Below are positions 4,701 to 62,315 of a stretch of DNA of 64,000 nt, in pieces. Source of the stretch: Lepidodermella squamata (lineage: Eukaryota; Animalia; Gastrotricha); contig JBLDXI010000020.1 in assembly GCA_047495785.1 (NCBI GenBank), positions 2,790,001-2,854,000 on the forward strand, written 5' to 3'. Each line of letters starts with the position of its first letter. Positions within the stretch are counted from its first letter, which is position 1. The notes below the pieces were generated by a model, which saw only the letters and a program-made list of their open reading frames with translations, had not been told where the DNA came from and made no database searches. The translations under genes and the position numbers were made by a program.

Positions 4701-4970
4701 TATCGATTCATTAGAGAAAAGTAAGGATGGTTTCAAGTCTTTACGAATAGCGACGGTCATGCCGCCACTAATACTTTTGGTATTGATGTCACGAACAGGA
4801 GGGGCGGAGAATATTGCGTAACCAGATATAGACTTTGGTTCCGTACCGAAGGTTTCGACCAAGGCAAAGATTAAGAATTGTTTCAGGGTTTTCATGTGGT
4901 TTTCAGCTTTAAGACCCGAATGAATGTTCCAAAACAAAATAGAAAAGTTCCAGTCACTAGTTTTCAGCAA
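1770..4970 (-). CDS. LINE ORF2: APE endonuclease + reverse transcriptase + C-terminal CCHC
   Basis: Endonuclease motifs SILFWNI, VGDFN, SVIDY, SDHFPI. RT motifs KAPGPDG, NYRPLSLL, QFGF, DFTKAFD, GVRQGD, YADD. C-terminal CMFC...HISYDC. The first ATG (4895) lies after the first endonuclease motif. Confidence 0.95.
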   Translation of the reverse strand: MLKTSDWNFSILFWNIHSGLKAENHMKTLKQFLIFALVETFGTEPKSISGYAIFSAPPVRDINTKSISGGMTVAIRKDLKPSLLFSNESIILVRVQAKLLRGVNTIMGLFIVYNRPYSATSQIQVLEKITSLHDTYSSTYDVPLLVGDFNIRIGNQSETLTDDEAFYPLAPRRSKDTSVSTSSVVKHFFSMCNHMSCYVANGRCSGDRQGEFTFVGHNGQSVIDYCLLPPDLLASKFSTFSVRQDIINSDHFPIAYYLKSDEITFKQTSASTSYTKVHFDSGAFHNHLLNTDIDSFADNLPQMPNDALRSTLDLISNFATRGHIPYDTKIIEADSTRPDVGDHVNFCLYRKQANASRKMRRILNRNKEISVINSDKTKRSLWVAFKTAPLSPQNQPQMHEWVEFFGELYRNRNVVSPPLELTTSDPILDAPLTIDEVKMAIELQKAGKAPGPDGITAELMQHSDLNVSFFSKTLFKIFEPCFLSYTLPSGLNLSLFCTLFKKGDSSKPDNYRPLSLLSVIYKTYSTILKLRLEKWCRIHSIIPEEQFGFEKGLSRLHAAFVLQSLATYQIHVRGRMLFICLIDFTKAFDCVPHNRLIWKCQRLGISSSFAKRLNSLYSDAKAKVRVGSKLSIADIAIERGVRQGDVLGPLMYNLYTADLPLHLAENAKNLSDTPKLLSTKVLCVLYADDSTPTATNAVDLQIQIDAMSTYSTREGLSPNPGKTKVIIFSQAPVSPDRYSFNMNGVPLKVVKSDFYLGVPISSDLSWFEAIENALTRGNSCYNALSSHRIKLSMIERNNLDTLFCSKIEAAMLAGSELWGLFAPSRVAKLDSVCYKYYKRARDIPYNASSLSTGFVMGLIPPSLKAKLNAVKFTCELTKCANPLVNDAFSFYFHSRPKMGVLNPIHATRKFLLSYNLPPDFWFMRDPAVMEQFFNLVKDCYVSELSVKFHNKYNASYLLARDGYFGISKIFENYPPDLRNTALRVVTNTVFRRIEHFIFRIDDVTCMFCGNVTPLSQLAYHISYDCLSVAGHDPARLLSADNRIVKNTLIFFKRLEKIVSTAIQTTV

Positions 4971-16027: not shown

Positions 16028-19000
16028 TCAGGCCGCTATAATTAGGGGAGTCGCGTAAGTATACAGGACTCCAGTGGTTTTTTTCTCCAGAACGTCCACA
16101 TGGATGAGGCCGGAACTTTGCAAAACCGGGGTATTACAATAGACTGTAGGAGCGCCATTGCCAAGCGACAGTACCCCGAGTCCATTAACTAAGATTCTGC
16201 CTTTCACTTGGTCGTAGAAAGCACATTGAAACGTCGAGCTGAAAATGTCGAAGCATGGACCCTGAAAAGATACCGTCTCCCCGCCGAAAACTTTGACAAC
16301 AGATGGTACGGTGGTGATTGGCTTGCCGATGTCGCAGTTTCTTGCATCTAATCCAGTGTCTAATCGGAAAATCCATCTGCCTGGCTTGCCTGTATTTGAA
16401 TTCATGAAAGCTGAAACATTCGCCGAACATGAATCAGGTATCGTGTAGAAGTTGGCGTTGTCGCCAGCATCGAAACCGGCTTTCACGATTAAGCCCGTGC
16501 CACAGTTTGGTGATGGCCAATTGATTTTATTGTAGTATAAAATGGAGAAAGAGAACCGACCGTCAGTTGCCAAAATCATTTGAAAAGTATTTCCTGTACC
16601 ACAAGGTTTATAACTCGGTGCTACATTCTCCCATGTTGCGATGAAAAGCCATTTAAGAGTGAGGCCAACAAATCGTGGATATTTTTTAACGATTTCGGCC
16701 TCGGCCTCTCTGAGCAATACTGGATCGGTCGTTTGGCGGTAATAAATATCACCCAAATCAGTGGTGTCAATGTCACTCCAGAAACCAGCAATCATTCGCT
16801 TATCGCGGCTGCTTGGTCCACAAAACGGTAGGCCATCCCTTATACCCCGTTCGAATGAAAGGGCTCCATTGCTGTTGACATACAAAGTTTTTTCCTTCTT
16901 TTTGAAAAACGGGAAGGGGATTGACAGATCGATAGGTGGGTCTGTAAAGATGTCATCTTTTTTAGGCATAACGACGTCTCCATTATCTATTCCAAATGGA
17001 AAGAGGTCACCCAACGGCACTTCCGGGGGTGTTGTAGGATCGTTTACTGGCGTGGTGGTAGGAGCAGGATCCCTTGTCCTGGGGGTTGTAGGATCATCTG
17101 CTGGCGTGGTGGTTGGAGGATCCACTGTCCTGGGGGTTGTAGGATCATCTGCTGGTGGCGTGGCTGGAGGATCCACTGTCGTGTCGAAAATGTGTTCAAT
17201 GAGCTTGAAGGCGTCATCGATCGCCTTGGTTTGTTTGGCGAATGCTTCATCGCCCCCACTTACTTGATAGTCGAACAAACAGCCAAAAGAATCGCCGCAA
17301 ATCATTAAAGCGCCATCTCCCGGCGGATCAAGTTCGAAAACTGGCTCGAATGATAAATCTAAGAATTCTTCATACGATGAACCGTTAGGGTACGTGAATA
17401 GGCTCTCCGCTTCTTTAACCACCCACAAAACTCCGAATTTTTTGTGAATTTCAGACAGAGAAGAATCGGCAGGTACAATTTCTCCACTAGGAGTTTTTAG
17501 GTCATTTGCCGCGTTGCCATCATAGTCACCCATTAAACCAGATATCGAATTCATATTGTTGACAGTCGCTGTTGAAATAACCGCCATGGACCCTTTCCCG
17601 ATTAAAAAGTTGAACGCCATGCCACAGCGAAAGGCAACATTGACTTCGGACAACGCGTCATCGATCGCTGTGACCAAAAATTTGGCGAAGTGTTGTGTTT
17701 TCAGGGCCTCGTTGCCGAAATTGAGCTTAATACCGTCAACCAATATCTCGGGCGCCGATGACTTGGATAATTGGATCTGTACCACAGAGCCATCAGAACC
17801 TTCTCGCATTGTGAATGCGGTGAAAACGGATGCATTTCCAGCAAACATCGCCATTCGGGCTTGCATCATAAAAGATGATGATCCTACGGGTTTTACCATC
17901 CAGAATTCGCCAACTCCGTTGAATGTGTATGTCAGCCCATCGTAAGTCTTGAAATGTGGGTCGCCCATAGCTAGAGCAGGCCGTGGGGCCTTGTAGTTGC
18001 TGCCGTCGTTAATTGGCCGTTTCTGCTCGAATTCCTGACAGCGAGATCTGTCAAAACCAGGTAAGACATCTGCAAATGCCCTGCCTTGGTGACAGCACGT
18101 GAATTCACCAATCTGGTCCTTCAAAGCATTCACGTAAGTTGTCGACCATGAGGTTGGCTGCTTCAATTCACTGTAACTCAAATCACGCCGTAAATTGCTA
18201 GTCGCTGCGTCGTAGAAACATTGCTGGCCACTTCCGCCTTGGGTTGGAACGGCTAGCCGCATTGCTATGAATGACTTTTGAGCATCGGGCGTCTGCGAAA
18301 GGCCGGGGTCCAACGTCAATGAGTAGGCGTCGAAATTAGAGGTAAAACCCGCATAGTTTCTATCGGCCTGAGCTTGTTCAAGCAAAGGTGGACAAGGTCG
18401 TGATCCATAATCATCCAGGTTCGGAATTTCTTTGTTTTCCAATTGCCACGTGTCACAGACGAGTGGATAAAGTTCCGCTCTCGGCTTCTCACCGAATAAT
18501 CTTCGCAGAACAAAGCCTGATGCTAAGGGTTTTCCGCCACATTTCACTGATTTCTCGGCGATTTCCGAAAATCCTGCCAGGCATTTGATTGGGTCCCTTG
18601 TCGCTGATCGCCAGTATTCCGCCTTGCACGTAGATAAGTTTGCGTTTTTGTCGTAGCAGATGAAGTCGGTTATTACCCCATTCCCATCAGCACTGCTGAT
18701 GATTGTACTGACTATTTCTCGGTCCGATTCATTGACACTGTAGAAAGCCGACTTGGCGACGGTCAACATTAGAATTGCGTCGTCTGAAAGTTCTGCATTG
18801 ACATTAAGCAAAAGTTGCCCCATATTGATGGTCGCCGATCCTTCATTCGAATAATTTGCCAGAAGTAAGCCGAGAACAATCCATTCATCGTCTTTCAGAG
18901 CTAACAAAGTAATATCGACTGTAGCTGCTTTGGTCAATCTCGGGTGGTCTGAGGGCCACTTGATTTGAGCTTTTCCATCAGAAACTGCATTGGCATAACT

Positions 19001-20116
19001 GCCATCAATCGTCGTTGTTGCCAAGGTGATAGAAACTTCAGGCCGCTCGAGCGCAACAGTCAAGTAAGCCTTGTAACTGCTAGTGATTCCTAAGCTTGTT
19101 GTCTCGATGATTTCCACAAGAACGCGACCCGAGTCGTGGAAAAATGGAGTGATGCAAAAGACTGTGGGAGCTTCATTGCCCGGCGAAATTCCGCTGACAC
19201 CATTAGTGAATATTTTGCCTTTTACTGGGTCGTGAAAAACACATTGAAACGTCGAGCTGAAAATGTCGAAGCATGGCCCCTGAAATGATACGGCTTCTCC
19301 GCCGAAAACCTCAACAAAAGGTGGACTGGTGGTGACGTGCTGTTTGCTATCAAAGTTTGCATCGCAATTTCTTGTTTCCACGCGATTGTCTAACCGGAAA
19401 ACCCATCTTCCAGGCTTGCCTGTGTTTGAATTCGTGAAAACTGAAATGTTTGTCGTGCACGAACCAGGTATCACGTAGAACTTGACGCTGTCGCCAGCAT
19501 CGAAGCCTGCTTTCACAATTGAACCAGTTCCACAGTTTGGTGATGGCCAATTTATTTCATTGTAATACTGAATTGAGAAAGATAGGCGACCGTCAGTTGC
19601 TAGTATCATTTGAAACGTATTTCCTGTACTACAAGGTTTATAACCCGGCGCCACGTCCTTCCAAGTTGCGAGAAAAAGCCATTTCAAAGTGAGGCCGGCC
19701 AGTCGTGGATATTTTCTAACGATTTCATCCTCCGCTTTCCTCAGCAATGCTGGTTCGGTTGTTTGGCGGTAATAAATTTCACCCGACTCTGTGGTGTCAA
19801 TGTCACTCCAGAAGCCAGCAATCATTCGATGAACGCGGCTGATTGGTCCACAATACGGGTAGCCATCCCTGATACCTCGTTCAAATGAAAGCGCTCCATT
19901 GCCGTTCACATACAAAGTTGTTTCTATGTTGTTGAAAAACGGGAAGGGGATTGACAGATCGATAGGTGGGTCTGTAAAGATGTCATCTTTTTTAGGCATA
20001 ACGACGTCTCCATTATCTATTCCAAACGGAAAGAGGTCATCCAACGGTACTTGACCTCTGGAAATAGCGAAAAATTTCAGTACTACCAGGAACCTTAATA
20101 TGAATTTCTTTACCAT
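16028..20116 (-). CDS. Secreted NIDO-IPT-AMOP-VWD protein (Mesh/SUSD2/MUC4-like) with a duplicated C-terminal NIDO-IPT, 1362 aa, intronless
   Basis: Signal peptide; NIDO motifs (IAGFWSDID, NTFQMILATDG, SNTGKPGRW) occur twice; AMOP-like GSGQQCFYD; VWD GDPHFKTYDG..YTFNGVGEF; no transmembrane helix seen. Confidence 0.88.
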   Translation of the reverse strand: MVKKFILRFLVVLKFFAISRGQVPLDDLFPFGIDNGDVVMPKKDDIFTDPPIDLSIPFPFFNNIETTLYVNGNGALSFERGIRDGYPYCGPISRVHRMIAGFWSDIDTTESGEIYYRQTTEPALLRKAEDEIVRKYPRLAGLTLKWLFLATWKDVAPGYKPCSTGNTFQMILATDGRLSFSIQYYNEINWPSPNCGTGSIVKAGFDAGDSVKFYVIPGSCTTNISVFTNSNTGKPGRWVFRLDNRVETRNCDANFDSKQHVTTSPPFVEVFGGEAVSFQGPCFDIFSSTFQCVFHDPVKGKIFTNGVSGISPGNEAPTVFCITPFFHDSGRVLVEIIETTSLGITSSYKAYLTVALERPEVSITLATTTIDGSYANAVSDGKAQIKWPSDHPRLTKAATVDITLLALKDDEWIVLGLLLANYSNEGSATINMGQLLLNVNAELSDDAILMLTVAKSAFYSVNESDREIVSTIISSADGNGVITDFICYDKNANLSTCKAEYWRSATRDPIKCLAGFSEIAEKSVKCGGKPLASGFVLRRLFGEKPRAELYPLVCDTWQLENKEIPNLDDYGSRPCPPLLEQAQADRNYAGFTSNFDAYSLTLDPGLSQTPDAQKSFIAMRLAVPTQGGSGQQCFYDAATSNLRRDLSYSELKQPTSWSTTYVNALKDQIGEFTCCHQGRAFADVLPGFDRSRCQEFEQKRPINDGSNYKAPRPALAMGDPHFKTYDGLTYTFNGVGEFWMVKPVGSSSFMMQARMAMFAGNASVFTAFTMREGSDGSVVQIQLSKSSAPEILVDGIKLNFGNEALKTQHFAKFLVTAIDDALSEVNVAFRCGMAFNFLIGKGSMAVISTATVNNMNSISGLMGDYDGNAANDLKTPSGEIVPADSSLSEIHKKFGVLWVVKEAESLFTYPNGSSYEEFLDLSFEPVFELDPPGDGALMICGDSFGCLFDYQVSGGDEAFAKQTKAIDDAFKLIEHIFDTTVDPPATPPADDPTTPRTVDPPTTTPADDPTTPRTRDPAPTTTPVNDPTTPPEVPLGDLFPFGIDNGDVVMPKKDDIFTDPPIDLSIPFPFFKKKEKTLYVNSNGALSFERGIRDGLPFCGPSSRDKRMIAGFWSDIDTTDLGDIYYRQTTDPVLLREAEAEIVKKYPRFVGLTLKWLFIATWENVAPSYKPCGTGNTFQMILATDGRFSFSILYYNKINWPSPNCGTGLIVKAGFDAGDNANFYTIPDSCSANVSAFMNSNTGKPGRWIFRLDTGLDARNCDIGKPITTVPSVVKVFGGETVSFQGPCFDIFSSTFQCAFYDQVKGRILVNGLGVLSLGNGAPTVYCNTPVLQSSGLIHVDVLEKKTTGVLYTYATPLIIAA
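17025..17180 (-). repeat. Coding tandem repeat, ~51-bp unit x3 (DPPTTTPADDPTTPRTV), mucin-like linker
   Basis: GGGGTTGTAGGATC recurs at about 17026, 17082 and 17133. Confidence 0.85.
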
Positions 20117-32514: not shown

Positions 32515-35037
32515 TCAATTTTTCATAAATAAAATTGTCACGAGGAAGATCAGCAGGGTCCAATATACTTCGTACAGCAGTTTCGGAGCAAAAACAGACC
32601 AGACAAACAAATGATTGGCCTGCAGGGTAACACAAAATGCGCAAATAACGAAAACTACGCATTGATATGTCATGAAATGAAAGCGAGATGCATTTTTGAT
32701 AGATTTCATAGCTGCAAAATAAATGAATAATGGGCCGATAGAAGTTGCTAGGAAGACGAGGCAGCCCGATATCAGTTGGTGGTGTTCGGTTAGACCAGTA
32801 TAAGCAGCTCCCACGTCTACTGTGGCCAAACGGTTAGAGTTTTCAAGGGCTGAAAACGCCATTCGAGCCAACGATATCACAAATAAAGTCTTCAAATTTG
32901 TGAATTTTTCGAAAATTTCGTCAGATAAAATTGAATGTAAGGAACACGACAAAACCAGAAGAAGAAATAACGGGAAAATGATGTAGCACCTCAATAGCAA
33001 GCAACCAAGTTGGAAAAAGAAGAACAAAAATATCTCAACGGCTTTTTCCGATTTCAATTTCACAAGAATTATCGAAAATACGACGAACAATAATGCATAT
33101 GAATATTGAGCATAAGGAGTAGCTGCATATGCGTCGTTATCAGTGCTATCTGAGTTCCATTTCAAATCTCCGCGAATCGTTTTATACTTAATTATGAAGT
33201 AAAAATTTAGCAAAAATGCAAGAATAAATACGGGTTTCATCCCGAAATTCGACTTATTTCTCAGCTTGGCGAGAAAGAAAAGAACTGATGTTAGAGCAAT
33301 AGTTGTAAATAATAAGGTTTGCAGTTGAGCATCCGCCCTAAACATTTTTGCATAATCCAAATTATCATCAGCCCATTTAACGCCAGGGTAGAGAAAAGCT
33401 TTGCATAGTCGCACACAAACTGGAATAGCAATGAAATTGAACAAACTTTCCTCGTCGAATTTTTTCGATTCGTTCCATTGATGTTTTAACTTGAGATAAA
33501 TGAGCAAAAATGCAATCACCTGAGGGGCAATATACCAGAAAAAGTGCTCCTCTTCAACGAAACTTGATGATAATATGACAGCCGCGTTCAAAATTAACAG
33601 GGGCAAAAAGTCGACGGAAAATTCAAATATTTCTTTGGTATTCAACTTCACACTCAAAATCAAATAAATCGGTAACGTCATCGGCAATATTGATAACAGA
33701 GAAGCAAAGATGAGCCAGAAATTACCAGCTGATGTGAACAAAGCCAGGGCATTAACAGCGCCAATAACAATTGAGGATATCAACAGGTTTCCTAGAGAAT
33801 TGTGGAGCTGTAAATTTCCAGATGCACTCACTATCAGTAAAGGAGTGAAGCAGGCCAACAGCAAGACGACAACTCCCAGCAAGCTCAGTTGATTAACATT
33901 CGAATGTCTGCTGAGTAATATTTTCTGCAAGCGTCGCATTTCAACATAATTTCCCGACAAATCAGCTTCGTTGAACTCAGCATAAGGCCCACAATCTGAG
34001 CATAAATTGAGGAGATGCTCGAAATTTTCGCGCAAAATTTCTTTCCGCCGATTCGTATCCAGAAATTCGGAGACACTTTGTGGAAGCATTCCCAAGCTTT
34101 CAGAAGGAATCGAAATCCCTGTTAATAGAGCTATCAAAGTTGCAACGTCGACTTGACTAATTTCGGATAAATCTGACTTCTGAGTCGCGATAGAGGGTTC
34201 CTTGAATAAACTGGAAACGAGAAATACTGGAGTGTAAATTTCGTCGTCAGTTGAACCTCCGTGAGATCCTTCATTCGACATTCCGTGATCTCCCAAGACG
34301 ATAAGCAAGCTTTTTTCATTCATAGCAATGACGCTTTTGTGAATTTCTAGAAAGATGTTGTCCATTTCTCGCAATTTCGTGCAAACCAATTCGCCATCGG
34401 GGCCTCGGCTATGGCCAATATGATCGAGCCCGAGATAATGAAGAATCAAGACGTCCCAATCTGAGCTATTTAACTCTTTGCGCATTAAAGGCTCAGTCAC
34501 AGCGTTGTCCACTTCGGTGAAATCGACAGCGTAGAACGATGAGACGCCTTCGTGGCGGAGGAAAAATCGAGTCGGATAAAGCTTAAGCCATGTATCATCA
34601 CCGTAAAAGACCACCGACCGATTTGCTTGACTCCATTGCTTGAGTAAAGAACTCACGGAAACCTCAGATGACTGCATGTTGAAAATGACATCGGCGAACT
34701 CGGGCACTGTTCCAGTAGTGAGAGTTTTAATTCTAGGAGAGGTCACTGTTGGCGTGAACGTTCTCACATTTAGCACAATGCCAGGAAAGCTCCGGAGGTT
34801 AGTTAAACAATGAGAATGAGAGAAAATGAATGACGTCCGAAAGGCATCGAGGACGAAGAAAACGAGTCTATCAATCGCCTTCTCCTTCGCTCGCGGTTCA
34901 CTAAAGCCTTGTCTTGCCATGTCGGTCTTGCGTATCGATGATAAATGCGACGAGATGTTCAGAAAAATACCAACAAATGCGAAGATTTGAATAATGAACA
35001 CCAAAGCCAACAAGATGACCACGAGTGAAACTCGCAT
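32515..35037 (-). CDS. PIGG: GPI ethanolamine phosphate transferase 2, intronless
   Basis: Motifs VLDAFR, PTVTSPRIKTLTTG, FYGDDTWLKLYP, DFTEVDNAVT, LHYLGLDHIGH, GDHGM..GSHGGS, many TM helices and HLFVWSVFAPKLLYE. The start is probably MRVSLVV at 35037; an in-frame upstream ATG lies at 35127. Confidence 0.93.
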   Translation of the reverse strand: MRVSLVVILLALVFIIQIFAFVGIFLNISSHLSSIRKTDMARQGFSEPRAKEKAIDRLVFFVLDAFRTSFIFSHSHCLTNLRSFPGIVLNVRTFTPTVTSPRIKTLTTGTVPEFADVIFNMQSSEVSVSSLLKQWSQANRSVVFYGDDTWLKLYPTRFFLRHEGVSSFYAVDFTEVDNAVTEPLMRKELNSSDWDVLILHYLGLDHIGHSRGPDGELVCTKLREMDNIFLEIHKSVIAMNEKSLLIVLGDHGMSNEGSHGGSTDDEIYTPVFLVSSLFKEPSIATQKSDLSEISQVDVATLIALLTGISIPSESLGMLPQSVSEFLDTNRRKEILRENFEHLLNLCSDCGPYAEFNEADLSGNYVEMRRLQKILLSRHSNVNQLSLLGVVVLLLACFTPLLIVSASGNLQLHNSLGNLLISSIVIGAVNALALFTSAGNFWLIFASLLSILPMTLPIYLILSVKLNTKEIFEFSVDFLPLLILNAAVILSSSFVEEEHFFWYIAPQVIAFLLIYLKLKHQWNESKKFDEESLFNFIAIPVCVRLCKAFLYPGVKWADDNLDYAKMFRADAQLQTLLFTTIALTSVLFFLAKLRNKSNFGMKPVFILAFLLNFYFIIKYKTIRGDLKWNSDSTDNDAYAATPYAQYSYALLFVVFSIILVKLKSEKAVEIFLFFFFQLGCLLLRCYIIFPLFLLLVLSCSLHSILSDEIFEKFTNLKTLFVISLARMAFSALENSNRLATVDVGAAYTGLTEHHQLISGCLVFLATSIGPLFIYFAAMKSIKNASRFHFMTYQCVVFVICAFCVTLQANHLFVWSVFAPKLLYEVYWTLLIFLVTILFMKN

Positions 35038-36260
35038 TTTTATTTGAAGCGAAATTTCTAAAATAAGTAAAGAGATTTTAACAATAAATCTGGTAAACTG
35101 AGAAGCTAGGTTTTGGTTAGCATTCATGACAGTTTCCTACGATTCTATCAAGCATAAATAAGCTATAAATTCTAAATGCTCCTGGGATATTATTGGAGTG
35201 CCCGAATGGGAGACGGCTATACAAGCAAATACCGTTGTCAACACAGTTGAAACACGGTTCCTCTTACCAGTAGAGAGTGGCCATGACTTCTAAGCGTAAT
35301 TGTAAACGGTAGTTGTGGGTGTCAGAAGTCAGAATCTCGAAATAGAAAGTCGAATTACATCAGCCACAAGAAACGTGAGCTAAGGAGCGCCGAGAAACGA
35401 AAAGAGAAACTCAGTCGAAAGCAGTCTAAGGTAAAAGGTACGGAAAGATCAAAGAAAAAGACCGAAAGCGAAAGATTTGAAAAAAATTACCGCCATAAAA
35501 TTTACAAATAATACAAATAATTTTATTTTTAATGCAATATTAATTTTACAGCATTAGAAAATAATACCGATGAAAAAATGTAGCGCTAAAAATCGATATT
35601 TTGGATCGATTAAGTCAACCGGATTTTATGAACTTCCAGCGTATATATCGCTTCGTACTCATCGTCGCTGGTACATATTTTAGTTATAGAATATTTGTTG
35701 TTTTGGCAGCTCTCTCTCTTGGTTGTGTGGAATGGATTTTCCTGAAAACTGGAATGACTGTAAATCAAACAGATGAATAAAATTGGCTCCACTGGCTACG
35801 TGTATCTTTGAAATGCGCCCGATACACTTCGAAAATTGACAAACAATTCAATTATACTGTTTGAGTCTTTACTAATTTACCAACCAAAATAACAACAAGC
35901 TATATTTTTCTAATTGTATATATGTTTTTTATTGGCCTCTTGCCTCCTTATGCCACACTGGATCACCTGTTGAATCAAAAGCTCATTTAGTTCATGTCTC
36001 TCTACGCTAGTAACCGATCGCCGAGCTTATTTTAATCCTAAGTTTTAAAAGAATTAATTCAATGCTCGCCTTTACATTAATTCAGCGAAGATTATAGCTG
36101 TGTGTAATGTGTACTGATGATTCCGTGTTTCGAGCATTCAAGGCAGTGTCTTCCGGTTTAGCTCGTTATTTCTTGATGTTTGAAAAGCCTGATTGCTGAT
36201 AAATTGTTTTCATTCTAGATCTTAGAAATGAATTTAGGCTTTAGATAGGGCGTTCAGTAC

Positions 36261-49621: not shown

Positions 49622-52309
49622 ATGTCGCTCATTCAAATCGCAATTCTAGCTTTGAGTGGCCTTATTTCAGGTTCGTGCCGTAGTAGTAGTAAGGTGTCTG
49701 TGCGTAATTTGTTTCGCTGCAATTTTTCAAGGAGCGTCCTGCGGCCAGAACGAACAAAGGCTTATGAATGCGCTTTTCAAAGACTACCCGAGCCTCGAGC
49801 GGCCGGTGATAAATGAAAACGAAACGCTGCGTGTCGAACTCGGCCTAACGCTACAACAGATCATCGACATGGTTTGTAATTATAACACCGCCGTATTTTG
49901 AAAATTTTACAAACTCTCACAGGACGAAAAGAACCAAATTTTACACACAAATGTTTGGCTTTTCTTGGCCTGGAACGATTATAAACTGCGCTGGAACCCG
50001 GCTGATTACGGCGGTATCGCCCAGATTAACGTGCCGGTCACGAGAATTTGGAAGCCTGATGTTCTTATGTACAACTCGGCGAACGAGGCCTTTGATGCGA
50101 CTTACCCGACCAATTGTCCGGTTACTTCCGACGGCAATGTCACGTGGGTCCCGCCGGGCATGTTCGCATCGACTTGCTCTATCGATATCACGTGGTTTCC
50201 CTTCGATGAACAAGCTTGCGATATGAAATTCGGTAATTTTTCGCATATTGCGGCATTTTTTTATTCCAAATATTTTAACATTTTATTAATATTAAAATTG
50301 GAATATTTATTATTAATATTAATCATTAATCATTTTAATAAATTATTTTTTGAATATTCAAATTTTTTAATTTAAATTCATTTTGCTGAATTTTTCCAAA
50401 ATTTATTTGAGGTTTAATTCGATGTTTACCTTCTGTAATTTAGGTTCATGGACCTACGATGGCACGAAAATAAATTTGACACTGAGTGGAGAAGCCGGTA
50501 TCACGTCAAGTTTCATCAAAAACGGTGAATGGACGCTTTTAGGTGAGTTGTCACAAATATTCACGTGGTTTAATTAACTTTTATTCATGCCCAGTTTTGT
50601 TTACCCGCCTCAAATTTTGACTTGAAAATTATCCTCAACTCAATTAATTTTACGCTTCAGGTGTACCGGCTAAGCGAAATTCGGTTTTCTACGAGTGCTG
50701 CCCTGACACGCCGTATGTTGATATCACGTATACGGTGAAAATTCGACGCCGGTCGTTGTACTACATGTTTAACCTCGTTCTGCCATGTGCTATGATCTCT
50801 TCAATCACCCTTATGGTGTTCATCCTGCCTCCCGAGGGCGGCAAAATTGGCCTCGGCGTCACAATTCTACTCTCACTTACTGTGTTCTTGATGCTAGTCG
50901 CAGAAACTCTGCCTCCTACCTCAGAAGCCGTGCCTCTAATTGGTAAGAAATCGCCCACCTTAATTTTTGCGAATAATTGAATTTCTATTATTTTCAGGTA
51001 TTTATTTCGTTTTCATCATGTTTGTGTGCTCGCTTTCGGTGGTTTTCACCGTTGTTGTGCTGAACTACAATTTTCGAACATCCGAATCTCACGTTATGCC
51101 GGCCTGGGTTAACCTTGGCATTTGCAAATGGATGGCTTGGTTATTGAGAATGTAAATTTTTCGATATTATTAAGCTCGAAATCATGTGATTTCCGGTTTG
51201 TTAAGGGAGCGACCGGGAGAGCAACTGTCGAAAAAATCTATTCTCCAAGCAAGCGTGAAACTAGCTCAAATTCAGAACGATATCTGCGATGAACTTGATA
51301 TGGTAAGTAAACAAGAATAATTTTCAGTAATTAATCTAATTTTTCCTGTCCTCAAAGTAATTACAGGCTTAAATATTCGAACCATTGGACTTGAGGCTCC
51401 AACACATATTTTACCCCTTCTAAGAAATGTTTTTCGATTAATTAAAATTTCGGCTTTATCGAGTGATTGTCGGCATGATGCCCCATAACTCTGGGATTTT
51501 ATTTCAACTACTTGGTACCATCGGCTAGTTAGAAACATTCTCAATGTTGGCTTCTAAAACTTTTGATATCGGGGAAATCACTGATTTGTATAATCGATAC
51601 TTGGAATCGATATCGGCTCTGCAGGCTGAAGTATGAGGCATACCTCATAAACTGATAGCGAAAAATACTCGCTATTGTGAGATCTATCGGCATGGTCATG
51701 AAAAAATTAGATTAAACGTGAGACATGAAGTTGAAAAATCTCAAATTTAGCGTTGGAAGGTCGGAGAATTTTTAATCAATTTTTAAATATTTAGCTATTT
51801 TATTTGCATTGAGAAGGTATTTCCTTACCGAAAATAGGTCCAAAATAGAGGCCAGAATTCAACTAGAAATGCCGAGTTGCTCAAAAATCCTGATCTTTCG
51901 GCGAAAAAATTGAAAACAAAATTATTAGGAAATTTATTCGAGCAATTTTCATTTATTTCTAGCGACATCTTATTTTCTGTTAGAGATTATTTGATTTTTG
52001 TGAATGCTTTCTGCTTTCCTATAGGACAAGAACGCGCCGTTCAGCTACGAAGATTCCGGCAATAATATCATCCGATGCCGGCGCGATTCAGGCGTCGATG
52101 AAGACCCGTCCGAGTTGTTCATGATCTACCGAGAACTGCGCTTTCTCACGGATAAAATGCGCGAAAAAGACAAGGGCGACTCGATAGCCGCTGATTGGCA
52201 GTTCGCCGCTCGCGTCATCGATCGACTCTGCCTCTACCTGTTCAGCTTTGTCACCATCATTTCTTCGGCCGTTATATTACTCTCGGCTCCAAATATTTTT
52301 TCTACTTGA
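49622..52309 (+). CDS. nAChR alpha subunit, alpha7-like (gene A), about 471 aa
   Basis: Exons 49622-49670, 49732-49871, 49923-50232, 50444-50542, 50661-50942, 50998-51151, 51206-51302, 52025-52309 total 1416 nt in frame. Cys-loop [15 protein letters not shown], loop [11 protein letters not shown], four TMs. Confidence 0.95.
51395..51760. mobile_element. Diverged MITE copy (family of 14665-15043) in the last intron of nAChR gene A
   Basis: Shares GGCTCCAACAC..., TGATATCGGGGAAATCACTGATTT, TATCGGCTCTGCAGGCTGAAGTAT and TCTCAAATTTAGCGTTGGAA with the first copy. Confidence 0.65.
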
Positions 52310-52481: not shown

Positions 52482-55400
52482 ATGCGGAAAAATTATTTTA
52501 TTTTCGCCTTATCAATAATCTTCAATTACATAACATGTAAGTTTATGTTTTTTCTTGCTTTTTCCGAAGCAATTTTCCCCCATTTTTTTAGTCTCACTTC
52601 AAGGCAAGGCGGAAAAAGAGCTGTTAGTCAAGCTTTTTGACGGCGACTATGAGGTCCTCGAACGGCCGGTTGAGGATGACAACGAGGCTATTGACGTTAA
52701 ATTCGGTCTCACCCTACAACAAATCATCGACGTTGTAAGCAATTTATTTTCGTATTCAGAATTTTTCGAATTTTAGGCTGGAATTTTTTTGGAAAATTAT
52801 TCCTGAAAATAATTTATTGATGCCGATGAATTAGGATGAAAAAGCCCAGGTTCTTACTACAAATGTCTGGCTAATGGAGGTATTTGATAATAATAATCGA
52901 AGAATAATTAGTAGTTGCTTTATTTACTCTGAAAAATGCTGCCTAACGAGTGTTTGAATATCATATTATCATCTCTGAATTTTCAAAGTCATCTTTCAAA
53001 ACATTGTGCACCCTGGCTAAAGCTTGTTAACCCTCTGAACATTTCTAATTCCATTCGTCATAGGATGAAGAAAAGGCATGGATGTTGGCAAAATTGTTGT
53101 GGGCAAAATTTTTACACTGGAGCGCTGAAAATATCAAAGCTTTATTAGCGGAATTTTGATATAGAAAAATTTAGCTGTTTTTAATATAATAATGAAATTT
53201 ATTAACTCAAATATTAAACAATGTCTTGTTGTTTTTCTTGTTTCATCATTGTGTTCCCAAATTCTTGCTGGCAACGACTGACTGACTTGGAATTGCGCCC
53301 TGAATCTTCTCGCTTCGCTTGACTGACTGTAAATCTGACTGTTTTCGCACCCCGCACGTAGGATGAGAAAAATCAAATTATCAACACGAACATTTGGCTG
53401 CAAATGGTATATTTTTTTCTTTTCAAATATTTCACAATTTTATTTCTCAATTTTTTTCTTAAAATTTTCATTTATTTCAACTTTTAACAAATTTCTCGCT
53501 TTGCTTTACAAATTCAGCTTATTTCGTGCGGAATTTTTGCTTATTCTATTTTTCTATTTTTTCTCGCAATTTCTTCGGCTATCGCTTTGCAGAAATGGAG
53601 GGACTATCGATTGACTTGGGTGAGTTATTGCGCTTTTATTCTGCTTCAACATATCTTTGCCTTATGCTTCTTTTGCCATCCTGGCTTATCCTGGCCGAAA
53701 TTGATAGGATCCGAAAGATTTCGCCAACATCACGGTGATAAACGTACCGCCGCAAAAGGTGTGGCGGCCCGATGTTCTCATGTACAACTCGGCGGATGAG
53801 AAATTCGACGCCACCTTCCCGACGAATGTTGTCGTCGATTTCGAGGGCAATCTTACGTGGATCCCACCCGGCATGTTCAAATCCACGTGTAACATCGACA
53901 TCAAGTGGTTCCCGTTCGATGACCAAGTGTGCGATCTCAAGTTCGGCAGCTGGACTTACGGTTAGAAAATTCTAAAAAAATTTAAAAATCTAAGTGAAAT
54001 ATTTTAAATTTGAATTTCGAAATTTTTGAAATTTTACTGGTTTTTGAAATTTCATAATTTAAATTTTTTTGAAATTTTTAAAATTTTTTTGAAATTTTTG
54101 AAATTTTAAAGTTCTGTGAAAATCAATCCAATATTTTTTCCATTTATTTTTAGATGGCACAAAGCTCAATTTAACGCTCATGAATGATTCAGGCGATATT
54201 AGCGCCTTTATAAAAAATGGTGAATGGACCCTGTTAGGTAAGTTCTTGGTTTTATTTCTTCTCATTGTGTAGAATTCTTATAACAAATTAGAATGCACTG
54301 AATCTATTTTGCACATCCTTATTAACACATTGAAATTGCTAACAAAAATAACAGCCGTTCCAGCTGAACTTCAAGTCAAGTACTATGAGTGCTGCCCGGA
54401 CCAACCCTACCCATCAGCTGTTTTTACTGTGAAAATACGCCGACGCGTTCTTTATTACCTGTAATTTTCAAAAAAATCTGCAAAAAATCTGAATTGATTT
54501 AACCTTGAAAAACCGGCTATTTTAGGTCCAACATGTGTTTCCCTGCATTTATTTTCGCCATGTTGGACCTGTGCATTTTCATCATTCCAGCTGGGAGTGG
54601 TGAAAAAATTAGCTTTGGTAAGATTTCAAATTTCTCTTCGAGAATGCAACTGGAATGATTTATATTTCCCACAATTTTCCAATCTTAAGTTGAGTTCGAA
54701 TTTATTGCTTGCGGTTATTAATTTTCGTTGATTTTTCTCTTGGTTTTTTACGTTTTTGATCGAATTTATTGTTGCCTTTGCAAGATGTTCCCGCCAAGCG
54801 CAATGTGAAGTATTACGATGAAGGCGGCGTGCCGTGGCTGGACGTTACGTTTCAGATCAACATCCGACGACGTGCCTTGTACTACGTCTTCAACCTTATC
54901 GTTCCATCAGTCCTATTGTTCGTTCTTGATTTTAATTTTTATGCCTTCGCTGCGCCTCAAAACGCTCGAAACATTTTTATTTTTGCAGCTCAAGCGTTCT
55001 CATTTTCTCCTCAAATCAGAATTCATCTTTACAATTTTTTTTATTCGAGTGATTTGTTATCGGAAAAATATAAATCCATCGATAATAGAATATTTTCGAA
55101 TTTCGACAGATTGCGCTATAATTTTTTGAATTCAGCAATATAATTTTGGTGATTTCGATATTGATTCGAAAGAAGAAGGGTATTTTTATTCTTATCCGCG
55201 ATTTCACCGTAGAATTATGTAATTTACGGGAGGAAATCCTGTAAAAACCGATGGAAAGTGGTTCGGTAAATATCGGTATTTTACGCGGTAGGACTGAATT
55301 TCTAAGAATTCTTTTCATGCTAAGTAATTTTTCCTAAGTATCTTAATTTCCTAACTAATTTTTTGTGCCATTTTATATCTGCCTTAATCGTAGGATAATC

Positions 55401-57467
55401 TGTTTGATTGGATTCGCATCGTATCATGGGTTTAAAATATTGGAAAGTTCACAGAGATTTGGTTTCTGGCTAGTATTTAATGGGAGGGCGGGAAATATTT
55501 TTTGAGGTTCGAACCACTTGGGAAAGTTCGAAATCGTCCGAAAAATTGTACAAAAACACGCACTTTCTTGGTTTTCCTTTCGAAATCCCAATGATTAAAA
55601 TTAATTCCGAGAAATTTGACTTCAAAAATTGAAGAGGAAATGAGACGCTTACAATTGTAATTTGTTTATAATTTTTACTCATTATTGTTGTTGTATTTGT
55701 CATTTCGCAGATCGAGCGTGAGCTTGCTTGTGTTTACGTTGCCTGTCGAAAGTGGCGAGAAAATTTCTCTTGGTTGATTTTAATTTCCATAATTACCTTA
55801 TAACTCTAGCTAAAATTTGCCTATTTTTCCATGTAATTCTTCCATGGCTGATTGCTGACTGCCAGGTGTTACTATTCTGCTTTCGTTGACTGTCTTTCTG
55901 CTGATCGTCGCCGAGGCGATGCCGCCGACCAGCGACGCCATCCCGCTCATCGGCCTCTACTTCGCGTGCACCATGCTCATGTGCTCGCTATCCGTCATAA
56001 GTACCGTTCTGGTGCTCAATTTCCACTGGCGCCGGCCCGACACCCACGTCATGCCGCAGTGGGTGCGCCGCGGCATCTGCCAGTGGCTTGCCTGGCTGCT
56101 GCGCATGGAACGGCCCGGGCGCAACTTATCGCGTAAAGAAATGGTTGCCTCGAAGCAGCTGCAGCTGCAGGAGCGAACTTCGCGCAGCTTGCTGGCGAAC
56201 GTTCTCGATATCGACGACGATATTCGGTGCCTGGTTGACGGATTCAACAACCAGAAAATGTCGCCCGATTCCCAGGCTTTCGATATTGTAAGCCGGCCAA
56301 ACAGTAAATCTTTCCCACCGAGCGGTGGAAAGTTCAAGGTAAATTTTAGGCCCTACCAGTTCGTGCAGAACACAGAACACTGTCGGATAAATAAGCGTCC
56401 ATATTTAGGATTCCGTTTCAGGGAATATGAACTATAGGATGCTTGGAAGAACCTTAACTTAAAAGCCCTTTTTTACGTCGTAGGATCTCCATGATGGAGG
56501 TTCAAATAACAGAATCTCTGGGGAATTCGAAGGATTCGAAGATCTGGCACATTTATATTACTCTGAAGGCCCTCTGAAGGTCAGATCTTTCATTCGAAGC
56601 TTCAGTGGGATACATGATTGCATTGAGCTGTTAACATAAGGTCCCAGGTTACAGGATTCCGTGTGTATCTGCAAACGGGCTTGGAATTTAGAGCCAGTTT
56701 ATATTACCAAAGTTGTGTGCTTTCAAGTTCCTGTAAAAGGTCCTGGAAAAGGCTTATTCGAAAATTGAACGGTTGTTCCTCTAACTAATCTAATAGGGAA
56801 CAACTTAAGTCTATCGGAGCTTGAAAAGACTCATTTTCTTAAATAAACTTTTTGTCTCATCTGACTTTTATTCTACGTTGGCTGGAACTTGGTTCGCCGT
56901 TTCCTGAGCTTTCGAACGGTACCACACTTACTAGACTTATCCCATGCCGAAATCGTCTGTTTGAAATTGCCAAAGGATCCATTTTCAAAGCCATGCTTTT
57001 TGAGCGTGCAGAGGGAAAACTATTTTTAGTCGGCAAAGCCTGAACGACTCTTTACCTCAAAGCTAAAAATTATAAAAGTGCTTTGGGGAGGTTCTATGGG
57101 ACCCGAGAATCATCCCCTTATCTTTACGGTTTCCGTTAAGCTAGTGGGCTCAACGGATATAAGTTAAGCATGTTTTTGTATCGAGTTCCGAAGTTCCGAA
57201 CTCGAATAGTTTTAGAATATTCTATGATCGCTTTTATCTCCTATATTCAATCTATTTTAACAGTCTCGCGGAACTCTAGCAGCGATACTGCGCGAGTTGC
57301 GCGTGGTGACGAACAAGCTGCGAGAAGACCAGTCAAAAGATGACGAATCGTCCGAGTGGAAATTCGCAGCCATGGTCATTGACCGGCTGTGCTTGTACGT
57401 TTTCCTAATATCAACTCTCGTATCAACCGCTGCCATCTTCTTTTCTGCGCCAAATATTTTCGCGTGA
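52482..57467 (+). CDS. alpha7-like nAChR (gene B) with duplicated alternative exons; alpha or non-alpha isoforms, about 492-493 aa
   Basis: Exons 52482-52536, 52592-52734, [52835-52879 or 53362-53406], 53593-53619, 53708-53960, 54154-54237, [54355-54460+54526-54617 or 54785-54917+55711-55772], 55866-56338, 57264-57467. All are GT-AG, and either choice keeps the frame. Confidence 0.92.
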
Positions 57468-57902: not shown

Positions 57903-59382
57903 TCACGAAAGCTGCCTTTCATGAGAAATAAAATCTGGCAATCCGAAATCTTCTTGTTCGGTCAAACCGCATTTCTTATGGCGGAACTGTCCTCTGAAGC
58001 GGAACCATTTGTTAGCGACCCACTTGTGCCCGCGTATTACAGGGCAGCCGCCGTGATAAGTGCTTTGGTGCGCCGTTTCGTTGCGGTGCATGTTGAACCA
58101 GAAGAGACCTGTCCCTTTAACGGGCATTACACGAAGTCGCAAGACACTGAACATCGTACCACCACCTTCTTCCACGTCGTTGAAGTACATGAGCAGAGTT
58201 GCAATTCGATCACCGAGATTGTTGTCTACAGTTGGGGCCATGAAATCAACATGAGGTCTGTAGTGGCCACCAATACCATATCGATTCACCTGTCATATCT
58301 TACAATATAGAAAGTAATTGTATGCATTACACAGCTTTACCTGATACTGTTCACACCCATCTCCATCAAATGCGTTCATGCCGAAAATAGCCCCGATCCG
58401 TCGGGTCAGCTGCGGTACAACGTCAGAGGACACCCATGAAACTGCTGAACGCCTGCTGTCGTATGCAAGTAGTGCCCTTCGATTTTCGTGGTCTACCGTT
58501 GTAGCCGGTGCCAATGTTTTTTCGGCCTCAGATTTGAGAGTCTCAGCCTCCGACGAGGTAAATAAGTCGTAGATCATCACAGCCATTGGGTCTAGGCTTA
58601 GGATCTCCTCTTTCACGGGCTGCAAGATGAGATATGGATGATTGTTCCGATTGTCGTAACGACAGTATAACCTGGGATCAGCCGCTCTCTCTTGAAGACT
58701 AATTTCGGCGTATTCATTGCGACACATGTCGTACTCAAAGATGGCCTCGAGTTCTTTCGCCTTTTTCATTTGAAAGTCTTCAGTAGCCGTTTCTAAAGAT
58801 GAACCATTAGCCTGTAAGATGATGGAATATAGCATATCTGCGAATCAAAACATGAATACTTACTCTGAGGTAGAAAAGTATAGCATGCTGAGGAAGCTCT
58901 GATGCCAGTTTAAGGAAGTAGAGCCGTTTTTCCTCATTATTAGCTACTTCGGGCTGCTGTAGAGCAGATAAAACCGCTTGCAAAGCTTCCTCCGTTGTAC
59001 CGGACTCTAACGCGGCAAAATGAATGCCGTTGACGATTTCATCGAGCGGGATTGTGTTTCGATAACCGGAATCCCGTGTTAAGTTATAAGCCTGCCAAGC
59101 CTTGTTGAGAAGTCGTAGTGCAGTTTTTGGGTCTTGGCGGAACATTCGGAAGCCCTCGGTAAAAAGAATCGCCTCATCTCCTGGTTCGCAGCCATTATTT
59201 CGAGTCAGCGGGTGAAATTTACAGAGTTTTAGTATAAGAGAACCGATTTCAATCTCGTTAACTCGAGCCGCAATTTTCTTTCGAAAATAAATGGCCGAGT
59301 TATTACCGGAAAAAGCCACAAGGCAGCTTGCAATCGCTGCTACCAGTAGGAGTAGTAAAGCTAACTTGTCTACCTTATCCAT
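57903..59382 (-). CDS. Prolyl 4-hydroxylase alpha-subunit-like, about 458 aa
   Basis: Exons 59382-58864, 58811-58341, 58289-57903 join in frame. Motifs HPYLILQPVKEEILSLDP, YGIGGHYRPHVDF, DRIATLLMYFNDVEEGGGT and YHGGCPV..KWVANKWF. Confidence 0.92.
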
Positions 59383-59891: not shown

Positions 59892-62315
59892 ATGCTTTGC
59901 AGGGCTCATTTTCTTGTCATATTTCTAATATCGGCTGTAACACACCTTTCAACTGGAATGAAAACCAAGCGATTGCGAATTTTGGTGACTTATCCAATCA
60001 CAGGCTCGTCGGTAAAAATTGTCGATCGTCTTGTAGGCTACAATATTCTTCTCGATATTGTCAACAACCGGCCGGACATTTTGCCGGACTACAAGCTTGA
60101 AGTAGAGTATGGCGATGAAATGTCTGGCGGAAACAACGCCCCAACTGCTATGATGAACTGGCTGAGGAAAATGGAGAGCGTGCAGGCCGGTCAACAGCTC
60201 TACCCATCCCCGATAGCCTTGACTGCTGCGAACAGCAACGGTTGCAAAGGAAATGGGTTCTTCATCCATCATGTTAACATGGTGACTGTCTCAGGCACCT
60301 GTACGGCTTCACTCCTTGCAGACAGGAGTCGCTTTCCTAATTTGTACCTTACAATGCCCGTTGCTGGACCAAAAAACTACGGCTACGTTCGTTTTGTAAA
60401 AGAAATCGGGAAATGGCGGCGACTTGGTCTTATGACATCTCCTGACAACTCCAACGACTTTAATGCAGCTCTATCATTCCACCAAATCGCTACGAAGCAA
60501 GACATCGATTTCGCTTGGTTTGATGCACCTATCAAGTTTGACATTGAACGGGCTGCGTCTCTTAAAGCCAGCGATGCGAGAATTATAGTTGTCATGACTT
60601 CATCCAGAGCCGTTGCCATTACCTTCCACTGTACTGCACACCAGGCTGGTATTTTCGGGCCGCGTTACCTATTCCTTGTTTTTGACAACGCTTTCTCGAA
60701 CCCTTCTTCGTTGGCGGACGACGCCATTCCAACAGGCTGTTCACGATCCATACTGTATGAACAGATAAGGCAGACATATTGGATGGTTGATTTGGACGGA
60801 ATGGTTGACCTCACCCAGCGGAACTCATTAGGACTAACTCGGGCTGATCTGGATGATTTAATCTGGTACTACAAGAATTCCTCGATTCCAGGACCAGACT
60901 ACGATTCCCGTCTGCCACATCTTGACGCGATGACGCTTATAATTTTGGCATTAAATAGGACTGAGACCTTACTAGGGGCAGAGAACTTGTCTCTCAGTGA
61001 TTTCAGCACAAATGGCGAGCGGATTATGCAGTTGGCCAATCGTTCAGTGTTAACAACTGACTACTATGGATTGAGGGCTCCGCGCGTTCGGTATGACGCA
61101 AATGGTCAATTATTCGGTTTGCCTGGTTTTGTAAGTTACTGGACCCCAGATAGGTCTTTCGAAAAGATAGTTCAGATCGATCAATTTGAGAATAGCTCCT
61201 CGGAATCGTATGATGCCTACACTGTTAGATATTTAAAACGTCTTAGGTGGCCTAGCGAAGACGGACGTGTCCCGCGTGACTCCAGGGGACTGATTACTGA
61301 AATTCAGGAACCGGCGGCATCTTTCTTAATCGGGATCTCTTTCTTTGCTGCGATTTTATTTGTAATCCAATCGATCGGAATCGTGATTTTAGCTGTACAT
61401 TCGAAAATATCGTCCTTATGCTACTCCATGGTCGAAATGAAAGGCGTGGGCTTGGTGGGTTGTCTGATTCTAGACATCGCCGCTGTCTTGTTCGCGGTTC
61501 AAAATCAAGATACCGCACATGTATTATGGGTACTGCGTATCTGTTCTATTCCTATCGCAATGTCGCTGATAACAGGAGCGACTCTTTTAAGATCGATTTT
61601 CTACCTGAAGCAGACTGTCTGTCGTGCGTCTGCATACTGCAACAACCAAAGGCAAAGTAGCGTTTACGAAATGCAGCGCCCGAGAGCTATGAGTATTTCA
61701 GCAAGAAACAGTACAAATATGCAACGACCCAGAACAATGACTACAACAAATTCTTCGGCCATGAATTACAGGCTTGATGAACATATCAGAGGTGCCGAGG
61801 AAAGGAAGTATGATAGCAAAGTCAAACAAGCTCGAAAATGCGTTTGCGGTATTGTTGGGATCAACCTGGGTATTTTGATTGCATGGTTAGCTGGCTTCAA
61901 GTTGGAATGCGCATTGATTTTAGCTGGGCTGCCTATTTACGACGTTGTGAAAGATTCGGAGTATCGAAGTTTTGTCATCACATGCGTTACACCTCATCAT
62001 TCCGCTTGGCTAACAACTTTGGTTGCGTTGAATTTGGTTCTTATTATGATATCCTGTCTGGCGACTTTTAAAATGCGGCACTCTAGGAATTGCGCCGTTG
62101 AAAGTAATGAAATAGCATTAGCCGTTTGTTTCCTGGCTTCGATATTTTCAGCGACCCTCTTAATTCTGCTTATTCTGGGTGATGTCTATCGTCAACAGTC
62201 GACTGTTGCGATTACTTCGCTTATCGTCTCAATGGTGATGAGCGCCACCTGGTTGAGCGGAAATGTGAAACACTTAATCGCGCATTTATCGCCGAAAATA
62301 TTCTATCGCGCGTGA
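59892..62315 (+). CDS. Divergent GABA-B-like class C GPCR (Venus flytrap + 7TM), intronless, 807 aa
   Basis: Signal peptide; VNNRPDILPDYKLEV, LADRSRFPNLY, LKASDARIIV, WPSEDGRVPRD; seven hydrophobic helices; ESNEIALAV before TM6; no Cys-rich domain. Confidence 0.85.
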   Translation: MLCRAHFLVIFLISAVTHLSTGMKTKRLRILVTYPITGSSVKIVDRLVGYNILLDIVNNRPDILPDYKLEVEYGDEMSGGNNAPTAMMNWLRKMESVQAGQQLYPSPIALTAANSNGCKGNGFFIHHVNMVTVSGTCTASLLADRSRFPNLYLTMPVAGPKNYGYVRFVKEIGKWRRLGLMTSPDNSNDFNAALSFHQIATKQDIDFAWFDAPIKFDIERAASLKASDARIIVVMTSSRAVAITFHCTAHQAGIFGPRYLFLVFDNAFSNPSSLADDAIPTGCSRSILYEQIRQTYWMVDLDGMVDLTQRNSLGLTRADLDDLIWYYKNSSIPGPDYDSRLPHLDAMTLIILALNRTETLLGAENLSLSDFSTNGERIMQLANRSVLTTDYYGLRAPRVRYDANGQLFGLPGFVSYWTPDRSFEKIVQIDQFENSSSESYDAYTVRYLKRLRWPSEDGRVPRDSRGLITEIQEPAASFLIGISFFAAILFVIQSIGIVILAVHSKISSLCYSMVEMKGVGLVGCLILDIAAVLFAVQNQDTAHVLWVLRICSIPIAMSLITGATLLRSIFYLKQTVCRASAYCNNQRQSSVYEMQRPRAMSISARNSTNMQRPRTMTTTNSSAMNYRLDEHIRGAEERKYDSKVKQARKCVCGIVGINLGILIAWLAGFKLECALILAGLPIYDVVKDSEYRSFVITCVTPHHSAWLTTLVALNLVLIMISCLATFKMRHSRNCAVESNEIALAVCFLASIFSATLLILLILGDVYRQQSTVAITSLIVSMVMSATWLSGNVKHLIAHLSPKIFYRA

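Follow-up and report, generated by a model that had tools for sequence, protein, structure and literature searches.

Introduction

Within nicotinic acetylcholine receptors (nAChRs), a pair of cysteines in loop C sorts the subunits, and alpha and non-alpha subunits are normally treated as products of different genes. Orthologous insect subunits can flip between the two types, as do Drosophila beta2 and Tribolium alpha8 (PMC2064938). The alternative exons reported for insects and ticks in the papers searched are exon 4/4' of alpha4, exon 3 and the exon 8 that contains the second transmembrane helix (TM2) of alpha6, exon 7 of Bombyx alpha8, and exons 3 and 6 of RDL; in addition, splice-site variants insert residues into loop C of GRD and pHCl. 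No paper among those searched describes nicotinic subunits with alternative exons for loop C and the first transmembrane helix (TM1), or splicing that switches between alpha and non-alpha. Here we analyze gene 2, an alpha7/alpha6-like nAChR gene located at positions 52482-57467 on the forward strand of a 64,000-nucleotide stretch of the gastrotrich Lepidodermella squamata (GenBank assembly GCA_047495785.1, contig JBLDXI010000020.1, positions 2,790,001 to 2,854,000; this whole stretch is hereafter called the window), which carries two tandem loop C+TM1 cassettes, A and B, one with and one without the cysteine pair.

Gene 2 shares with alpha6 of insects and ticks the subunit group, a pair of 45-nt exons 3a/3b, and the logic of tandem exon duplication (PMC1919356, PMC2064938, PMC13578988). 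It differs from insect alpha6 in that the exon 8 variants of the latter cover TM2 (PMC2064938), whereas the TM2 exon of gene 2 is single and the duplicated unit is the preceding loop C+TM1 segment; moreover, the insect variants never remove the vicinal cysteines, which are missing from cassette B. In C. elegans, a single pLGIC (pentameric ligand-gated ion channel) gene, the GABA receptor locus unc-49, produces several subunits, of which the B and C products co-assemble (PMC6920096). As in gene 2, a shared N-terminal part is joined to alternative downstream blocks that include binding-site segments and membrane helices (PMC6920096), but unc-49 swaps the whole C-terminal half, including all four transmembrane helices, and encodes an anion channel, whereas gene 2 swaps only ~65 residues (loop C, TM1 and the M1-M2 linker) and the change crosses the nAChR alpha/non-alpha line. 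A first-pass annotation of this DNA had stated that no case of this kind was described; the statement holds for the loop C of nAChRs in the papers searched, but the concept of one gene encoding multiple subunits is already known from unc-49 (PMC6920096).

Two further subunits are relevant to the isoform carrying cassette B. Nematode EAT-2 is alpha7-like, lacks the vicinal cysteines, keeps the aromatic-box residues and forms an acetylcholine-gated cation channel (PMC7173930). It provides the best functional analogy for isoform B; unlike isoform B, EAT-2 has a gene of its own instead of arising by splicing, and it depends on an auxiliary protein, EAT-18. In human, dup-alpha7, encoded by CHRFAM7A, assembles together with alpha7, with fewer functional sites as the result. 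It is likewise a variant alpha7 subunit with an altered agonist-binding part (structure 9qto), but it arose by partial gene duplication and fusion, not by splicing, and what it lacks is the N-terminal binding loops, not the loop C cysteines.

Results

Gene 2 was rebuilt exon by exon. Between its last shared upstream exon and the exon encoding TM2 lie two homologous cassettes, each made of two exons on the forward strand. Part 1 of cassette A (54355..54460; acceptor AG, donor GTAATT) encodes a loop C with the YxCC motif and the pre-M1 arginines, and its part 2 (54526..54617; donor GTAAGA) encodes a divergent TM1 with an internal Asp, followed by the M1-M2 linker PAGSGEK. Part 1 of cassette B (54785..54917; acceptor AG, donor GTTCGT) encodes a loop C devoid of Cys-Cys (YYDEGGVPW), the pre-M1 segment and the first two thirds of a canonical TM1, which is completed by part 2 (55711..55772; acceptor AG, donor GTTGAT) together with the M1-M2 linker PVESGEK. 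Cassette A measures 198 nt (106+92) and cassette B 195 nt (133+62); each is open, begins and ends in phase 1, and has AG/GT borders. The cassette coordinates, phases and peptides of the first-pass annotation were all reproduced, including the phase 1 end at 54237 and the TM2 sequence from 55866, as was its observation that both cassettes are stop-free with canonical splice sites. As tandemly duplicated exons do, the cassettes form adjacent homologous units of near-equal length and identical phase with their own splice sites, and each is conserved (see below). A perfect 12-nt inverted repeat (54524-54535 and 54559-54570) is found between the 3' splice site of cassette A part 2 and exon-internal sequence; it is not conserved in the related contig L002 and may be due to chance.

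Human alpha7 is the best solved match for both cassettes. The YECC of cassette A, and with it the Cys-Cys pair, aligns to the YECC of alpha7 loop C, and the second loop C Tyr is kept. Part 1 of cassette B aligns gaplessly to alpha7 residues 178-220, with Tyr188 kept, Cys190 replaced by Glu, Cys191 by Gly, and Tyr195 by Trp. The cassettes also differ in TM1, which is unusual in cassette A (internal Asp and several Cys), and canonical and nearer to the subunits of other animals in cassette B. Cassette B lacks the usual TM1 Cys, with Pro-Ser instead of the Pro-Cys present in the upstream paralogue, gene 1, and in the other alpha7-like sequences compared. The M1-M2 ring carries Gly in cassette A and Glu in cassette B, and with every homologue tested, the full-length isoform B scores above isoform A. 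Both isoforms share loops A, B, D, E and F, TM2-TM4 and the intracellular loop. The choice of cassette therefore affects three elements together: the agonist site at its tip, TM1, and the charged ring at the inner mouth of the pore.

The conservation of the two cassettes was assessed in contigs from related species. The Logan contig L001 was recovered by a protein-representative search with the TM2-TM3 exon, to which it is 87% identical, and metagenome contigs were recovered from ENA by word-index searches with exon 5 and the TM2-TM3 exon. L002 and L019 (97% mutual identity) represent one species, and L003, L007 and L008 (99% mutual identity) one more distant species, L001 being a third source. 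L002/L019 carry the whole tandem gene 1-gene 2 pair, and their gene 2 has exons 3a and 3b, both parts of cassette A and both parts of cassette B in the same order as the window, with the same intron positions. L003/L007/L008 have an A-like cassette that carries Cys-Cys and lacks an internal intron; after it comes a B-like cassette that has no Cys-Cys and is interrupted by an intron at the same position as in the window. L001 begins 262 nt upstream of cassette B part 1 and contains both parts of B and the two last exons; it is probably too short to reach cassette A part 2. Part 1 of cassette A corresponds to L002 3813-3918, with Cys-Cys kept, and part 2 is 83% identical in L002 (3989-4080), with the Asp conserved. 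Part 1 of cassette B is 88-91% identical in L002 and L001 and 70% in L003, while part 2 is identical at 20/20 residues in L001 and L002 and at 17/20 in L003, its intron being at the same position in all. The full-codon part of cassette A is exactly 195 nt long and open in all three species that cover it (window, L002, L003), which always keep Cys-Cys, the pre-M1 arginines, the TM1 proline and the xEK motif. Cassette B never has Cys-Cys and always has YY and VPW, and the Trp at the Tyr195 position is invariant in all four B copies. Introns no longer align between the window and the related species; the recurrence of both cassettes in the same order, lengths and phases is thus a pattern far beyond chance.

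Substitutions were counted by the Nei-Gojobori method as proportions of nonsynonymous (pN) and synonymous (pS) differences, the synonymous sites being saturated (pS 0.65-0.85). Between the window and L002, pN was 0.138 for cassette A (pS 0.703) and 0.059 for cassette B (pS 0.729). These low values resemble those of the constitutive exons, with pN of 0.105 for exons 5+6 (pS 0.851), 0.058 for the first 83 codons of the TM2-TM3 exon and 0.227 for exon 2. Against L003, pN reached 0.468 for cassette A and 0.158 for cassette B. Within the L002/L019 species, the two haplotypes differ by one synonymous change in the 62 nt of cassette B part 2, while its flanking introns differ by 22-26%; over cassette A the whole stretch is identical, introns included, and this comparison is informative for B part 2 only. 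Taken together, these data support the view that both cassettes are functional coding sequence under purifying selection, and the alignments indicate that the split into Cys-Cys and Cys-Cys-less cassettes is older than the divergence of the related species sampled. We also observed that the identical segment, ~700 nt around cassette A and B part 1, and the divergent introns beside B part 2 make L002 versus L019 a mosaic, suggesting recombining divergent haplotypes or strains in the sampled population.

Isoforms with cassette A have adjacent cysteines in loop C, the definition of an alpha subunit, as do the copies of L002/L019 and L003/L007; isoforms with cassette B have none, the definition of a non-alpha subunit, as is the case for the copies of L001, L002/L019 and L003/L007. 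The sequences compared hence support a change of subunit class, in the formal sense, with the choice of cassette. A profile scan of metagenome contigs from the Joint Genome Institute with cassette B yielded only unrelated heteromeric-type alpha subunits with Cys-Cys and no more B-type cassettes.

All four combinations of exon 3a/3b with cassette A/B are open and encode 476-477 residues. The reading frame is also kept when both cassettes, or neither, are included. Inclusion of both adds a second TM1 and inverts the topology of TM2-TM4, and exclusion of both removes TM1, so that neither case gives a normal four-helix subunit. The internal introns lie at different places in A and B, and joining A part 1 to B part 2, or the reverse, gives no normal-length TM1. 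The donors of the cassettes differ as well: in the window, L001 and L002, both cassette B donors read GTT, with T at position +3, which in L003 holds for the second one only; the cassette A donors of the window, L002 and L003 read GTAA. If the B donors are weak throughout, as they may be, this would fit a regulated exon.

Tandem loop C+TM1 exons were also found outside the clade of the window. In the genome of the nemertean Lineus longissimus (L005, OU342993.1), two such exons (77680-77889 and 78661-78873), ~770 nt apart, occupy the same place as the cassettes of gene 2 and are used alternatively in annotated isoforms: RefSeq isoforms X3 and X6 use the first exon, and X1, X2 and X4 the second. 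By contrast with gene 2, where cassette B lacks it, both Lineus copies carry Cys-Cys. The RefSeq isoforms of this alpha7-like gene (P0161, P0300-P0303) swap exon 3, exon 4 and the loop C+TM1 exon in a combinatorial manner, and no paper describing them was found in the literature searched. They constitute the best available indirect evidence for one-at-a-time use of such cassettes. In the flatworm Macrostomum lignano, the UniProt model A0A1I8HTP0 (P0019) runs without a break across a tandem pair of loop C+TM1 units, located at that same place in the gene and each having Cys-Cys. Lineus, Macrostomum and the window have in common that the terminal residues are SFG in the first copy and SLG in the second, a hint that the duplications may share an origin. 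In a maximum-likelihood tree of 25 cassettes, the deep nodes were unsupported and both Macrostomum copies grouped together, while the clade-specific groups were solid (100/97 for B; 99/99 for A of the window and L002). On this tree, either one old duplication or repeated duplications may have occurred. At the Lingula and Watersipora loci, no second cassette was found and each has one copy. As a side observation, the Ephemera danica model KAF4528357.1 (P0012) contains four TM2 units in tandem and the model P0002 about nine; these models and that of Macrostomum seem to have been misannotated in a way that exposes clusters of mutually exclusive exons. From these comparisons, exon duplication itself is not unique, and the feature special to the clade of the window is the loss of Cys-Cys in one cassette.

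The other exons of gene 2 are all on the forward strand. Exon 1 (52482..52536) encodes the signal peptide, from the ATG start codon to a GTAAGT donor, and joins exon 2 in phase 1. Exon 2 (52592..52734), which encodes the N-terminal part of the ligand-binding domain, is open in the spliced model and has an orthologous exon in L002 and L003. The alternative exons 3a (52835..52879) and 3b (53362..53406), which cover the loop D region, are both 45 nt long and in phase 0 with AG/GT borders, and are identical to their L002/L019 counterparts at 14/15 and 15/15 residues, respectively. The 3a/3b pair of the insect alpha6 type is thus present in gene 2 and kept in L002/L019; the more distant L003/L007 have a single exon 3, fused with exons 4-6. 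Exon 4 (53593..53619), 27 nt long in the spliced model, has an ortholog in L002. Exon 5 (53708..53960; PF02931, E 1.6e-30; orthologs in L002 and L003) encodes loop A, the loop E region, the Cys-loop (C-x13-C) and loop B, and exon 6 (54154..54237), the last shared exon before the cassettes, encodes the loop F region, ends in phase 1 and is 93% identical in L002 and L003. Downstream of the cassettes, a shared exon (55866..56338; PF02932, E 1.1e-28) encodes TM2, TM3 and the start of the intracellular loop. Its 3' end lies at 56287 or 56338, either being in phase 0 with a GTAA donor; the latter is favoured by the partial conservation, in L001 and L019, of the residues as far as 56338. The last exon (57264..57467; PF02932, E 4.5e-10), 82-86% identical in L001 and L019, encodes the MA helix, TM4 and the stop codon. 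In L007 (9821-10306), an additional short intron, located past the end of TM2, interrupts the TM2-TM3 exon; together with the intronless cassette A of L007, this indicates that intron positions have changed within the gene.

The shared exons of gene 2 match the Pfam families Neur_chan_LBD (PF02931) and Neur_chan_memb (PF02932), the spliced translation shows a C-x13-C Cys-loop, a GEK motif before TM2 and an alpha7-type TM2, and the closest named relatives are alpha7-like and alpha6 proteins. By these features, gene 2 is a predicted gene for a cation-selective Cys-loop nicotinic receptor subunit of the alpha7/ACR-16/insect-alpha6 type. A tblastn search of every exon against the whole window found just one Cys-loop exon and one TM2-TM4 set, as the first-pass annotation had it, and neither a third cassette nor a second TM2 exon; in the same search the TM2 exon was single, with no alternative TM2 exons of the insect alpha6 8a/b/c kind.

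Gene 2 is the second of two tandem alpha7/ACR-16/insect-alpha6-type nAChR subunit genes on the forward strand between 49.6 and 57.5 kb of the window. Gene 1 (about 49670..52309, forward strand), an alpha-type subunit gene whose spliced model translates open, is compact, with few introns and no alternative exons. It has a single canonical exon (50661-50942, forward strand) for loop C with YECC, TM1 and TM2; the first exon, which would carry the start codon, was not found. The closest named proteins to its L002 ortholog are from a nemertean (69% identity), a brachiopod (66%) and insects (63-66%), and the best 120 matches included no rotifer protein. The tandem pair is present in L002/L019, and gene 1 is absent upstream of the gene 2 ortholog in L007. 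Elsewhere, the window contains a reverse-transcriptase open reading frame (ORF; RVT_1; 1770-4970, reverse strand), an ORF for a NIDO+VWD protein (16028-20116, reverse strand), a single-exon PIGO/PIGG-type glycosylphosphatidylinositol ethanolamine-phosphate transferase (32515-35127, reverse strand), ORFs resembling prolyl 4-hydroxylase by eye only (57903-59382, reverse strand), and a single-exon class C G-protein-coupled receptor (ANF_receptor+7tm_3; 59892-62315, forward strand).

Discussion

Cassettes A and B of gene 2 are most likely spliced mutually exclusively, as two tandem homologous exon sets for the loop C+TM1 segment, given the membrane topology of the possible products and the Lineus RefSeq isoforms that swap the equivalent exons. 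Cassette B, the more conserved of the two, is probably the more used and would be the major form, since usage follows conservation in insect alpha6, where alternative exons of lower conservation are also used less (PMC1919356). With cassette A, the gene would produce a classical alpha subunit: its loop C would carry YxCC, its TM1 would be the unusual one containing an Asp, and Gly would occupy the M1-M2 ring on the cytoplasmic side. With cassette B, it would produce a subunit that is non-alpha by definition, having Glu and Gly in place of Cys190 and Cys191, Trp in place of Tyr195, a canonical TM1 without Cys, and Glu in the M1-M2 ring. All the aromatic-box positions considered stay aromatic in isoform B, namely the loop A Tyr and loop B Trp from the shared exons, Tyr188, and Trp at the Tyr195 position. 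Isoform B may still bind agonist: Tyr188 is kept, position 195 is aromatic, B is the more conserved cassette, and EAT-2 provides a precedent. Its principal face would then still work, but agonist pharmacology and gating would be changed, and the splice choice would alter the chemistry of the binding site, TM1 and the charge of the pore vestibule jointly rather than switch the site off. We consider this explanation as a whole, with exclusive use of A and B, B as the major form, and an agonist-binding B with changed properties, to be a likely one.

Several observations weigh against this explanation. In vertebrate receptors, agonist responses usually suffer when the vicinal disulfide is lost, and isoform B could therefore have a principal face that binds poorly or not at all. 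The length of each cassette is divisible by 3, and neither the frame nor nonsense-mediated decay can enforce their exclusivity. A search for docking/selector RNA pairing in the cassette introns of three species gave only AT-rich, non-conserved matches, and the protein collections held no full-length or spliced protein of the clade of the window. Finally, cassette A evolves 2-3x faster than B and is very divergent in L003 (pN 0.47), and its role may, to judge from this rate, differ between species.

If B were indeed a beta-like subunit with a non-binding principal face, it would co-assemble with isoform A or the gene 1 product, and the A:B ratio would set the number of agonist sites among the five interfaces. 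The conserved absence of Cys-Cys from B, the normal complementary face retained through loops D, E and F of the shared exons, the ability of unc-49 isoforms of one pLGIC gene to co-assemble, and the solved structure of a human alpha7/dup-alpha7 chimera (9qto) all speak for it. Yet B keeps Tyr188, has Trp at Tyr195 and receives loops A and B from the shared exons; EAT-2, alpha7-like without Cys-Cys, forms acetylcholine-gated homomers with EAT-18 (PMC7173930); and the scheme would presuppose co-expression of A and B in one cell. We therefore regard a beta-like B as rather unlikely. The broader idea that one gene supplies alpha and non-alpha subunits that co-assemble in the same neurons, the splice ratio setting the number and kind of agonist sites per pentamer, seems to us similarly doubtful. 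Of the first-pass proposal that splicing switches subunit class and tunes the agonist sites, what stands is that cassettes with and without Cys-Cys are conserved and constrained, while tuning by a non-binding B is doubtful in view of Tyr188, the Trp and EAT-2.

Alternatively, only one cassette might be used, the other (A, or the reverse) being a decaying or rarely included relic, and the gene would make effectively one subunit. Cassette A does evolve faster than B, has a charged residue in an odd TM1 and is highly divergent in L003, and the less conserved alternative exons of insect alpha6 are less used (PMC1919356). However, a neutral exon at saturated pS would show pN close to pS, stops and indels, and for cassette A, pN is 0.14 versus pS 0.70, and the three species covering it all have Cys-Cys, undamaged AG/GT borders and a cassette of exactly equal length, B being more constrained still. 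An assembly artefact, in the form of a collapse of two paralogous genes or a wrongly inserted duplicate segment, could be suspected from the tandem paralogue immediately upstream, but gene 1 is complete by itself, and the cassette order between the same single exons recurs in the independent assemblies L002, L019, L003, L007 and L008, and in L001 for B and the downstream exons only. The first-pass annotation had named a dead exon and a mis-assembly as the ways in which its idea could fail; with both cassettes present at low pN against saturated pS in related species, and with the A/B layout recurring in independent assemblies, neither objection holds. Recurrence and low pN together make a decaying pseudo-exon and a mis-assembly very unlikely, and we regard a relic cassette as highly improbable and an assembly error as having practically no chance of being the explanation.

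In conclusion, what is new here is an A/B layout conserved in two related species; that one pLGIC gene can supply several co-assembling subunits was already known. At least one further phylum of spiralians, Nemertea, has alternative loop C+TM1 exons in an alpha7-like gene, and a flatworm is a probable second case; these are present in database annotation only and not in the papers searched. In gene 2, both subunit states are held in one gene as alternative exons, and both are kept by selection in the related species sampled. The gene thereby offers a natural swap in which loop C with its vicinal cysteines, TM1 and the M1-M2 ring are exchanged while the rest of an alpha7-type subunit stays the same, and the comparison of A with B bears on the contribution of the vicinal disulfide in an alpha7-type receptor and on the standalone function of a Cys-Cys-less alpha7-like subunit.

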